Shown: one piece after another, positions 37,374 through 60,100 of the stretch
Position numbering within the stretch: position 1 is the stretch's first letter
Layout: every line of letters begins with the position of its first letter
Source of the DNA: Oikopleura dioica
Lineage: Eukaryota > Animalia > Chordata
NCBI GenBank assembly: GCA_907165135.1
Contig: OU015566.1
Location: 930,001 to 994,000, forward strand
Direction: 5' to 3'
Length of the DNA stretch: 64,000 nucleotides
Translations under genes and position numbers: made by a program
The notes under the pieces: generated by a model
What the model was told of the DNA's origin: nothing
Seen by the model: the letters and a program-made list of their open reading frames with translations, nothing else
Database searches by the model: none

Positions 37374-38791
37374 CAGAGTTGCAAATTTTTTGAGCAGGTG
37401 ATCAGCTCAGCTCAGAGTTGCAAATTTTCGAAATTTTTTCTGAGCTGAGCTTGCTGAGCTGAGGTCGAAATTGAGCTGAGTTGTCCACTTTGTGTTGGAG
37501 TCAAAACTTTGCACCCGGGAAGTCCGGGCAAAATCTCCAGCTGTACAAATAAGATGCAACGAGCCCACCGACAGGTGATAACTCCCGCAGAGGCTGCTCT
37601 CAGGCCAAACTCAGAGCAACTCTCGGCGTGAGATGTGTGAGGGCACTCTGAGCCCAAGATCAGGAATAAGCTGAGCCCCGGATGAGCCACAAAAGTAAAG
37701 ATTTGGAAGAGTAAAAAATAGAATTTGATGAAATTAGGGTTATCGAGAGCGTAGATTCCGAACCTAAGATCGAAAAAGTCTTTTAATGTACAAAATTTTT
37801 ATAAAATTTGCGGTCCCACACGATTTTTTCGAAATTGGCCATTTTTGACCGGCGCTCACGCCGACATTTTGAAAAATAATTTCATCTACAGGTAGATCAA
37901 ACCTTGATGAAGAGATGATGTAATCTAAAGAAGCGTATCTCAGCTTTTTCAAATTCAAAAATTTCATATTGAAATCAACGCGATCCAAATCAGATGTCAA
38001 AACAACGAATTTTTTTTTGACTTTTTCGCTCATTCAATCCTTATAATATAAAGATAGGGGCGTAGTTTATGAAGCAAAACTTTTTCGAATTCCGACTTTC
38101 GCAAAATCGTGTGGGACCCCCTTAAATTGATCAGGTATTGGTTTATTGGTTAGGTGTACATTAAAAGTCTTTTTAGACTTCAGATTCGGAATCCACGCCC
38201 TCGATTACCCTATTGGGCAAATTTTCATCAAATTCTATTTTATACTCTTCCATATTTTCACTTTTGTGGCTCATCCGTGGCTGAGCTTGATCCTGATCTT
38301 GGGCTCAGAGTGCCCTTAGATCGTATTTGATGAAGGGTTCACACATCTCACACCGAGAGTTGCTCTGAGTCGGGGCTTTGAGCAGCCTCCACGGGTGTTA
38401 GCACTTGTCGGTGGGAGCCTTGCATCCTGTTTGCTCAGTTGGAGACCTTGCCCGTATTTCCTAGGTGCCAAGTTTTGACCCCAACACAAAGTGGAGTGAG
38501 CTGTGGTTCCATCTTTGTGAGCTCAATAGACTGAGCTGAGCTAGCTGAGCTGAAGTCTAAATTGAGCTGAGCTGAGCTGACCCTCACCTCAAAATTGCAG
38601 ATAATTTCTGTAACAGCTAGCTCACAAAATTTGCAATTCTGGCTCAGCTCAATGATTTTCGAAAATGATCTGTTCTGGTCAGCTCAGCTCAAACAATTAT
38701 CACGCAGCTCAGCTCAGCTCAACTCAGAGAAATTTTCACTCAGATCATGTCAGCTCGGCTCAGCAGAAGTTAATCAAAATTTGCAACTCTA
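37374..38791. mobile_element. hAT-like element (outer copy) with (GCTGA)n subterminal repeats
   Basis: cagagttgcaaattt ... aaatttgcaactcta; flanks caacaaac / ctccaaac (6 of 8 match). Confidence 0.7.
37413..38641. mobile_element. hAT-like element (inner copy) nested in the same family, with long internal inverted arms
   Basis: TIR cagagttgcaaatttt / cagaattgcaaatttt; perfect 8-bp TSD gctcagct at 37405-37412 and 38642-38649. Confidence 0.9.
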
Positions 38792-56150: not shown

Positions 56151-57351
56151 CTCTTCTCGCGATTCTTCTTCAGAAATTTTCGATAAATCGAGCTTCAAGG
56201 GTACCTGCTTTGGGTAGCCTTAAAAGCGAATGTCACTTTTTACTCGCTCAAAATATCGCTCAAAAAGTACCTTTATCCTCCGCTCAACGAAGATTTTTGA
56301 TGCTCTCTCTTTTTGGTCTCTGAAGAAAGTGAACAGAAACGGGGCCGGATCGGACTCGTAAAATCGTAAAAATTGCGAGTTGTTGATGCTCAGCTATATC
56401 TTCGTAAAAACGGGTTCTGCTCGGCTGTAGCTGGAGCTCGTAAAAACCAAACGAGACAGACTATGCTTCCGCGCTTCCACGCAGCTCAACTCTCAACTCT
56501 CGGCACCTAAAGCGATAAAAATTAGAAAAAAAATGGCCGCCTTCTATTCTGGGTATTTTAGGAGATCGCCGGCGAAAATCAGCTGGCTAGAATTCAAGTT
56601 GTTTGCGGATAATCTTCGCTTCGGGGCGAAACTAGAAATTTCTACAAAATTTTTAGTAAAGATTTAAATTTTTAACTGAAACAAATTTTCAAATAAAAAA
56701 ATTTTTAATAAAGAATATTCTTACCTGGCCTAATTTTTTCTCTGTATAATTTTACGTGTCAGTAATCCAAGCGTAAAATACTCTCGAATCGAATTTGAAT
56801 CACTGTTCGCCAATAATGGCAATGGAAGATGATGGAAAGCGAGATTGGCACATTTGCGCGTCTGTATTATTATTGACAGGCATTGGGAAAAGCGGGACTT
56901 TCATGATTCGATAAGTCCATCGATTAATGCTCAATGCAGAATTGACAGAAGCCTCAGTAACGTTCCCGAAATCAGATTTTTGCGGATTTTTTCTCTGCTT
57001 TGTCGGAAATAAAGAGCTTTCGCTCATCGCAAGTTTTTTATCAATTTATTTTTTTTTCTATTCTATTTGGAAGAAATCAAAGTTTCAGAAGACAGATTGA
57101 CTAAGACAGCTTAGCTTACTACTTCGCTCAAAAAGCTAAGCTTAGCCAATCAGCCAGCAAAGCGAAATTTCTTCCTTGACAAAGATCGCTTGGTTGAACA
57201 ATTTTGAAAAGTTGCTTCTCAAAATTCAGCTAAGCATATCTAAGGCAAAAGATATTTAGCTCAGCATTGCTTATTTACGAAAGATCGGCCATTTTCCCTG
57301 TAGCCAACTTTGTTCCCATCTTAGTTTAATTTCTATCCCCCTTGCTATCCC

Positions 57352-57442
57352 CCTGCTGAGCTCAGCTGACCCTCACCTCAAAATTGCTGAGCTGAGCTTA
57401 GCTGGAGCTCACCTAGCTCAGCTCAGAAAATTTGCAATTCTG
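57352..57442. mobile_element. Right-end remnant of the (GCTGA)n hAT-like family
   Basis: gctgaccctcacctcaaaattgc..gctcagctcagaaaatttgcaattctg, as at 38575-38641. Confidence 0.75.
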
Positions 57443-58409
57443 ACCCTTATCCTAACTCTAGCTACAAGCCCCCTAACCCTAACCATAATTTTTCCTCATA
57501 AAATTATGAAAAATTTTGTACTTCTGAATCTTACCTTAATTTTGAGCAGGGTTCCAAGAGAGAACTCGAATATCTATCTCACAAAAGCTTGGGAAAGAAC
57601 GAGAAAGAGCGAGGTCAATTATATTAAAAATCCTTCTCAATTGACAAAGCTCTTTAGATTTGATAGCCGACGCGTTTTTATGCCGCCATTTCTCTTTCTT
57701 TTTGACTCTATTTGCCCTTCTGAAGAAGCTGTAATTATCATTTCCTGGCGCTCTTTTTTACCTTTTTTTTTTGGAAAAGTTCAAAACATCGTTTTTTTTT
57801 CTTTTCTAGCGTGAACCCTCTGCTCCTTTTTATAGAGCTCAAAAGCGCGAAAAGAGGCTTTTGAAAAGATGACCTTTTGGGAAATGCGAAGGGATGAAAA
57901 GGTTTGATTGTTTACCCACAATGGAATATTCATCAGCACATCTTAGCGGTTAGCGGCCCAAAAAAGAAGACGAAAATGCGAAAATAAAGAGCCCGCGCAA
58001 TTATCGAATCTGGACATATGTTACTGTAGTTGACAAAAAGAGCAGTAAGAATCCAGTTTTATATATTTATGCATAGAATATTTTTGAAAAAGACCATTAT
58101 TGAAAAGTTTTCCTATTCAACGAAAAAAATTGAAGGAATCTAGGGTCACCTTTTTTCCTTGATTGTCAAAAATCTCATGATTTATTCAAAATGGCCCATT
58201 TCCGCATGATAGATAACACTGATAGATTCCGATCTCTTTCGAATACGACGAAAGAGCTACTTCGTGTTAGCTGTCCTGTCAGAAATAATTCCGGTACTTT
58301 CAAATTTATGCGTGTTTTTATTTGCGCATATTCTTCAAATAGCTTTTCTATTTCTCATAAATGCGGACAATTTTTTTTATTTTCCAAGAGAAGATTTTTA
58401 TCAATCGAG

Positions 58410-59973
58410 ATGAGAAGAAAAACGATTGGAATTATTCTTCTGCTTTTTGGTTGAAAACAATGTAATTATTCTTTCAAGGCTTAAAATTTTTAAGGGATAT
58501 GTTCTTTGATCGTCGGCATCGTGATTCCAGCGGTCTACAGTAGTTCAGGAAAAACGACACCTTCTTCGACACAAACGATGACGTCTTCATCTCTTCCAAT
58601 GTCTTCGACTTCAACGATGAATTCAACAATAATAATTTCAACGTTATCTGAACAATTGACAGCTTCATCAACTACAGCTTTCTCATCAAATAACACACCG
58701 TCGAACATATCAACTACGGCAGGAACGCCAGTAACTGAACCATCAACAAAAACATTAGCTCCTTCTTCAACCTCAATTTCAAAACTTACAACTGTAACAA
58801 CAAGGACTACAACAACAACAGCGCCACTTATGACATCAGCTGAATCAGAACTAACAATAACCTCGACAGCAACAACATCTTCAATAGCAACTACAACATT
58901 GACACCCACAACAACAGTAACAACTACGACGACTTACACTACAACAAGCAAAGGTTTTGTTCGACCAGGACAGAGTTGCAAATTTGGCTTTATTTTTGCT
59001 GAGCTGAGCTGAGCTGCCCTGAGTGAGAAATTCTCTGAGCTGAGCTGGCCTATTTCGGAGCTCACTCAGCTGAGCTGAGCTGAGTTGGCCATTTTCAGAG
59101 GTCATTGAGCTGAGCTGAGCTGAGCAGACCTTTTTTTAGGTAGTTGAGCTGAGCTGAGCAGACCCTAATTAGAGCTGAGCTGAGCTGAGTGAGCTGGGTT
59201 GAGCTGTTTTTTACCGTTTTTAGTAGTAAAATTGTGTAAAAATCATTGAGTTGAGCTGAGCTGAGCAGAACAGATCATGTTCGAGAATAATTGAGCTGAG
59301 CTGAGTGATTATTGTCTGAGCTGAGCTGAGCTGAGCAGATAAATTCATTTTCGAAAATCAGTGAGCTGAGCTGAGCTCTCAGCCAGCTCAGCTCAGCAAA
59401 TTTGCAACTCTGGACCAGAAGGCCAGTATGATTTTGATCTTTGGCCGAATGGAGCCACTGTTGTTGACATGGACTGGAAGGTAGTGGGACTAAGCAGAAT
59501 CCTATTATTATTCATCAATTTAGTTGTTTGTCTCCTATGATACAGATCCAAGAACAGAGCCTGAAGCAATAAGTGTACGACCGGAGAGGGACTGTCTTTT
59601 CTTTGAATCCACGGAAGAGCTCTATAAATTCAAAATTAAAGATCCCGAAACAAACTCTTATCTTCGAGAGAACATGGATACGAAACTTGTTTATAAAGAC
59701 GGCGAAGATGAAGGCACCGTTTTTTTCTTTGAAAAACATGGAAAGGTGCGTACTTGCTGATTGCCTTTTAAATAAGAAAAGCAATTTTAAAAATTATTAA
59801 CGCTTATTCTGAAGGGAAACGCCGAATGGTTTTACATTAAATCAGAATCCGATTACTACTGGAGGTCAAGAAGTTCCACTGATAACGACGCTGCCTCTGT
59901 AAAACTGAAAGAAGAAGTAACTGAAGACAAAAATAAACCAAGATTTCAATATATGATACAAGAATGTATTTAA
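58410..59973 (+). CDS. Type II membrane mucin-like protein with an uncharacterised C-terminal globular domain
   Basis: Signal anchor IGIILLLFGICSLIVGIVIPAVY (spliced), Thr/Ser-rich stalk, then RPEGQYDFDLWPNG..WK|LFVSYD..HGK|GNAEWFY..QECI*. The frame is continuous only if 58969-59418 is removed. Confidence 0.8.
58971..59412. mobile_element. hAT-like MITE inside coding sequence; candidate GA-AG intron 58969-59418
   Basis: Perfect 16-bp TIR cagagttgcaaatttg; 8-bp TSD gaccagga / gaccagaa; (gctga)n repeats. Confidence 0.92.
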
Positions 59974-60100
59974 CTGTTATCTTATTGGATATTTTCCTAT
60001 TTATTGATTTGAATAAATATACTTAAAAACGTCACAACTTGTCACATGTGCACCCGAGACTGGTGAATAAATCTGCAATTCTAGCGCTGTAAAGCCACGA

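Follow-up and report, generated by a model that had tools for sequence, protein, structure and literature searches.

Introners are transposon-derived introns of algae and other protists, in which the target duplication supplies a splice site (PMC11282704). Those of Micromonas and Aureococcus (Huff et al. 2016; Gozashti et al. 2022; PMC11282704) are short, non-autonomous inverted-repeat DNA transposons located in coding sequence, and the homologous site is unbroken in relatives. One splice site is carried in the element and the other comes from a 3-nt duplication (PMC11282704), with donors that are GT or GC. The survey of Gozashti et al. (2022) mentions neither hAT elements nor tunicates in its main text. 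The non-canonical introns of the larvacean tunicate Fritillaria borealis have been proposed to be MITE-derived as well (Henriet et al. 2019, via PMC11282704 and PMC13326754). These introns have inverted repeats, target duplications and lineage-specific positions, and the duplicated target adds to the splice site. They are mostly of the AG-AC or AG-AT types and are dominant in that genome. A few transposon-derived introns are also credited to Oikopleura in a review table.

The GA-AG intron class of O. dioica was reportedly described by Denoeud et al. in 2010. Introns with GA, GC and GG donors and an AG acceptor are abundant in this species (PMC7072748, PMC8008620), and about 11% of the introns of Okinawa O. 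dioica are non-GT/AG (PMC8008620). The GA-AG introns are common, have an AG before the donor and have a consensus A at position +3 (PMC7072748). In the literature searched, no hAT family is linked to the non-canonical introns of O. dioica and no such origin is reported for them. The origin of new spliceosomal introns is a long-standing question, and pairs of filled and empty sites are rare in animals.

The window analysed here is 64,000 bp of chr1 of O. dioica OKI2018_I69, with the locus under study at OU015566.1:985469-993973 and the window itself spanning about 930001-994000 of the record. Within the window there is a recent hAT-type insertion into a coding exon of the Okinawa lineage of O. 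dioica, through which the 8-bp target GACCAGAA has been duplicated. The original prediction was of a 442-bp element with a perfect 16-bp inverted repeat, lying between 8-bp repeats at 58963-70 and 59413-20, and its coordinates and sequences are found as claimed (Table 1). As in introners, a short, non-autonomous inverted-repeat DNA transposon is located in coding sequence, the homologous site is unbroken in relatives and the target duplication could offer a splice site. The differences are that both boundaries would here come from the two 8-bp copies, in one case by way of a point mutation, and that the donor of this predicted intron would be GA. As in F. borealis, the host is a larvacean tunicate whose U2 spliceosome is permissive, and the inverted repeats, target duplication and lineage-specific position are shared as well, whereas the intron predicted here would be GA-AG and is a candidate at a single locus. 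Compared to the GA-AG class of O. dioica itself, the exonic AG before the donor and the acceptor AG are alike, and the length is not, since O. dioica introns typically measure about 49 nt and the candidate intron would be 450 nt. New here are the natural empty site and the polarity of the mutation at 58969.

Table 1. Features of the host gene, the inserted element, other copies of its family and the candidate splice forms, in window coordinates. A slash marks the exon-intron boundary.
Feature	Position	Strand	Remarks
hAT-like element, non-autonomous, 442 bp	58971..59412	+	internal (GAGCT)n blocks, without long ORF
5' terminal inverted repeat CAGAGTTGCAAATTTG	58971..58986	+	16 bp
3' terminal inverted repeat	59397..59412	+	exact reverse complement of the 5' repeat, 0 mismatches
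5' target-site duplication copy GACCAGGA	58963..58970	+	derived G at 58969
3' target-site duplication copy GACCAGAA	59413..59420	+	ancestral state
Family copy with nested second copy (37413-38641)	37374..38791	+	nested copy with perfect 8-bp duplication GCTCAGCT
Related family copy, truncated right end	57340..57442	-	~1 kb upstream of gene start; repeat with 2 mismatches
Exon 1 (MRRKTIGIILLLF..)	58410..58449	+	hydrophobic N-terminus, signal or anchor; same peptide in ortholog L003
Intron 1	58450..58494	+	45 nt, GT-AG, weak donor TTTG/GTTGAA
Exon 2, 5' part	58495..58968	+	Thr/Ser-rich, mucin-like, ends ..SKGFVRP; absent from public record
Exon 2, 3' part (..EGQYDFDLWPNGATVVDMDWK)	59419..59480	+	start ATG of public model g170 at 59469
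Intron	59481..59523	+	GT-AG
Exon 3	59524..59745	+	conserved core DC.FF.STEE.YKF
Intron	59746..59814	+	GT-AG
Exon 4	59815..59973	+	stop TAA 59971-59973
Proposed GA-AG intron, 450 nt	58969..59418	+	CCAG/GACAGAGT ... GGACCAG/AAGG; scarless; inferred from sequence
Rival GT-AG intron	58954..59418	+	AAAG/GTTTTG; in frame, -15 nt, GFVRP lost
Rival GT-AG intron, donor in inverted repeat	58975..59418	+	CAGA/GTTGCA; in frame, +6 nt, RPGQKGQY

The element fits a hAT-like non-autonomous transposon (MITE) in its 8-bp duplication, CAGAG start, multiple copies, small size and non-coding nature, the ORFs within its 442 bp being short and at chance level only. The terminal inverted repeats of hAT elements start by the YARNG rule, with which CAGAG agrees, and the length of the duplication and this start are together in agreement with the hAT superfamily. 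A second paired stretch of 17 bp adjoins the inverted repeats and is perfectly complementary. The interior is made up of (GAGCT)n blocks with short spacers between them. This differs from hAT MITEs generally, the interior here being dominated by a repeat into which the family also inserts. The repeat motif has 9 occurrences in the window, against 1.5 expected, and none of 100 shuffles reaches 9. Insertion of the element family into its own repeats seems to occur, as the nested copy sits in the GAGCT repeats of a copy of that family. The perfect duplication of the nested copy, GCTCAGCT, and the empty sites described below bear out the hAT-like 8-bp target duplication that had been proposed.

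In the contigs of two DNA runs the depth is 25,000-73,000 on the element and about 67 on the flanks, so that the family must have hundreds of copies. A hAT transposase partner was not seen within the 64-kb window. The hairpin of the truncated copy at 57340-57442 has a sub-threshold Rfam match to mir-24, which is taken as chance, and the Rfam search as a whole returned sub-threshold hairpin matches and nothing stronger. RNA reads from two runs (X4 and X6) match the GAGCT blocks of the element. The loose ends of these reads differ from this locus, indicating that other family copies are transcribed somewhere in the genome.

A search of other haplotypes or populations for the empty site gaccagaa had been suggested as a check of the insertion. 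The exact empty site, TTCGACCAGAAGGCC, is present in L007 and in L009, which are marine-metagenome contigs independent of each other, L009 being from Tara Oceans. Both are continuous across the site (...GGTTTTGTTCGACCAGAAGGCCAGTAT...), and the window with 58969-59418 taken out is identical to them across it. The gene on these contigs is a close relative of the window gene, with 93% protein identity in exon 3 (P0007), for which comparison with L007 and L009 gives a pS of 0.13-0.16 and a pN of 0.03-0.05, a pN/pS of about 0.2-0.3. Four more distant homologues keep GFVRPEGQY or a close variant unbroken, this being GFDRPEGQY in L001, GFARPDGQD in L003, GFVRPEGQY in L004 and TTTTTRGFVRPEGQY in P0010. 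L003 is the syntenic ortholog, with the same exon 1 peptide and the same downstream flank, L004 is an intronless copy and P0010 is from a marine transcript catalogue. The codon at the site is gaa, gag or gat in these four. From the empty sites in L007 and L009 and the unbroken motif in the four homologues, the insertion is lineage-specific and 8-bp-duplicating. All six relatives have an A at the position of 58969, therefore the G in the window is derived and the target was GACCAGAA. The same six sequences uphold two parts of the original prediction, namely that the insertion is into a coding exon, since the sequence is continuous in each of them (L001, L003, L004, L007, L009 and P0010), and that the ancestral target contained an AG, with the lone mismatch between its copies being a derived G that follows this AG.

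The continuity of the homologues across the site also means that, in this family, a single gene comprises both the Thr-rich part and the domain. They are in a single reading frame in L003, L004, L007 and the transcript-derived P0010, which was the sole full-length transcript-derived protein recovered with the intronless L004 protein as query. The exons on the two sides of the element, which would have been a refutation had they belonged to separate genes, are thus parts of one gene in L003, L004 and P0010. To the gene as originally described can be added an exon 1 at its 5' end, followed by a short GT-AG intron. The gene is a member of a small family with paralogues, and its predicted product is a Thr-rich protein, secreted or anchored, with a conserved domain in the C-terminal 150 residues. 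The downstream exons are all intact, none of the exons carries a frameshift or a stop, and exon 3 retains every family-invariant residue. The C-terminal domain may be a beta-trefoil, on the basis of atlas features and a sub-threshold Pfam IL1 match; the structure prediction of this domain had a mean pLDDT of 43 and was too poor to use. Protein searches with the exon 2 ORF gave no matches, and the protein search matches P0004 and P0006 were rejected as spurious.

The public model at this locus, g170 (CAG5102161.1), was reached by protein search with exon 3, in a cluster, and the same search led to contigs used in the comparison. It is 130 aa in length and is identical to the window from the ATG at 59469 to the stop. 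From 57486 to 59469 of the window the public annotation is empty, which leaves out exons 1 and 2, and the upstream and downstream exons are not joined in it. The OKI2018_I69 annotation was generated by AUGUSTUS, guided by hints taken from a small set of RNA data. As the relatives show one continuous gene, g170 appears to be truncated, with exons 1 and 2 missing.

Transcript data were sought for the same region. In the 2026 oligo-dT RNA runs X4 and X6, of about 1.5-1.8 billion letters each, there was zero depth on all exons when reads were placed on 58300-60100. Those reads that did fall at the locus were repeat-derived and on the element only. The locus was found in none of the indexed RNA runs, and protein searches did not find a full-length transcript-derived protein of the window gene. 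The gene may be silent in the X4 and X6 samples, stage-specific or dead.

The element entered the middle of the conserved motif, GFVRP/EGQY, and the 5' duplicate afterwards mutated from A to G at 58969. The proposal built on this history is that the permissive spliceosome of O. dioica would excise 58969-59418 as a 450-nt GA-AG intron. The first base of this intron would be the mutated base of the 5' duplicate and its terminal AG would be positions 5-6 of the 3' duplicate, by which the mRNA would be back to the exact ancestral sequence. By pairing in the pre-mRNA, the inverted repeats would set the two splice sites side by side. The predicted RNA fold of the region is very stable, at -207 kcal/mol and z = -8 against shuffles, and has the two repeats paired in a stem whose base holds both 58968/9 and 59418/9.

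Without splicing, reading into the element leads to a TGA at 59010-12, which is where a stop in this frame had been predicted. With 58969-59418 removed the sequence reads ..GFVRPEGQY.., and the frame is open via two GT-AG introns to the TAA. The earlier statement that a cut at both ccag sequences gives RPEG, with an open frame to TAA 59973, is therefore correct. The splice-site dinucleotides can be derived from the target duplication, with exact restoration of the ancestral sequence, as a potential of the sequence. The prediction of a scarless intron arising from an AG-containing target and one point mutation is accordingly divided in its outcome, as the target and the mutation are both found, while the scarless removal is at present a property that the sequence would allow. 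In-frame removability is in itself unremarkable, since many in-frame deletions with a G at +1 and an AG end are possible.

The original prediction overlooked canonical GT donors at 58954 and 58975, both of them in frame. Among the three donors that could be used with the acceptor at 59418, only the GA at 58969 retains the conserved motif. Weight matrices, derived from this window by ORF-joining heuristics, were too noisy to rank the three donors by score. The proposed donor has an exonic AG directly before the GA (CCAG/GA), as in the O. dioica GA-AG consensus. It continues as GAC, with a C at +3 where the consensus has an A. No T-rich tract accompanies the acceptor at 59418, in contrast to the gene's three other acceptors.

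The GA-AG reading has its best support in the derived G at 58969. This A-to-G change, yielding AG/G, is the single difference between the duplicates, and nothing else has changed among the 16 duplicated bases and the roughly 66 paired bases of the repeats. If a single random change fell within the duplication, it would turn 58969 into a G with an estimated probability of roughly 2%. The perfect repeats suggest a young insertion, and with such an age the chance of the change at 58969 would be lower still. Also in favour of this reading are the exact empty site, the conserved motif that the scarless product alone keeps, the intact downstream exons, the frequency of GA-AG introns in O. dioica and the very stable fold closed by the inverted repeats. 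Counting against the GA-AG reading are the zero exon depth in X4 and X6, the start of g170 at 59469, the C at +3, the weak acceptor context and the competing GT donors at 58954 and 58975. Furthermore, in a very young insertion the exons would stay intact even in a dead gene. On balance, the scarless GA-AG splicing of the element as a candidate intron is given about an even chance, and an intron is a plausible reading of the element that makes sharp predictions.

The alternative that survives best is that the insertion is unspliced and is a null allele in the sequenced laboratory individual, in which translation would stop at the TGA at 59010-12 and the C-terminal domain would be lost. The downstream exons would in that case be intact merely through the youth of the insertion, which the perfect inverted repeats indicate to be a recent event. 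The family seems to be active and abundant, there being a nested copy with a perfect duplication and a depth hundreds of times that of single copy, therefore some disruptive alleles are expected in any individual genome. The two RNA runs without reads on any exon are consistent with a null allele, as are the wild samples, which contain the empty allele. The gene may also be dispensable, as it belongs to a small family with paralogues. A null allele does not account for the sole change in the duplicated and paired bases being one that creates a G after an AG, at a chance of roughly 2%, and no exon has acquired a frameshift or a stop. It is a possible explanation, although on the unlikely side.

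Splicing from a canonical GT donor at 58954 or 58975 to the acceptor at 59418 would make the A-to-G change incidental. Both products are in frame and stop-free, and the gene's own intron 1 has a similarly weak donor (TTTG/GTTGAA). Use of 58954 would drop the five residues GFVRP, however, and use of 58975 would swap E for GQK, so that either product disrupts a motif conserved in six relatives. The derived G at 58969 is left unexplained by either donor, and splicing of this kind is considered distinctly unlikely. It is highly improbable that the downstream exons are a separate short gene (g170, 130 aa, ATG at 59469), with the Thr-rich part separate or dead and the AG at 59418 perhaps acting as a trans-splice acceptor, as the exact match of CAG5102161.1 and the lack of annotation between 57486 and 59469 are set against a model made by an automatic predictor, a 130-aa product without the N-terminal hydrophobic segment and the start of the conserved domain, and the sharing of one frame by the Thr-rich part and the domain in L003, L004, L007 and P0010.

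If the proposed GA-AG intron is spliced, the locus would be an introner-like intron gain of the kind known from algae and the larvacean Fritillaria, here with a hAT element as the source, a GA donor and both splice sites derived from the duplicated target. The GA, GC and GG donors of O. dioica would then be tied to transposon activity, as has been proposed for Fritillaria, and the truncated public gene model would be corrected. If the element is unspliced, the locus is an ordinary disruptive transposon allele. In either case the insertion is exact, the ancestral sequence is available from wild relatives, the donor would depend on a single derived base and the three competing splice predictions are distinguishable.

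A broader suggestion is that hAT MITE insertions are a general source of the roughly 11-12% of O. dioica introns that are G(A/C/G)-AG. Any 8-bp target with an AG followed by a G, or one mutation away from this, would on such a model become a scarless intron, formed wholly out of the two duplicate copies. Larvacean splicing would be permissive enough to accept the donor, and the present locus, with one fixing mutation and an empty site that persists in the wild, would be the process caught midway. This extension is regarded as unlikely.

The DNA runs and the metagenome contigs contain some further variation around this gene. A contig from DNA run X29, which has the same species label, has about 3.7% divergence in exon 2. 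At window positions 58930-58937 a few bases of the Thr-rich region are swapped in this contig for 39 other letters. The X29 contig stops near the start of the element, and the DNA contigs of both X29 and X30 break at the repeat. In L004, which comes from a marine metagenome of the JGI, the start of the Thr-rich coding stretch is abutted by a foldback element (L004:154-583), the 96-nt arms of which are 92% complementary. A second transposon may thus border this gene family in another larvacean.
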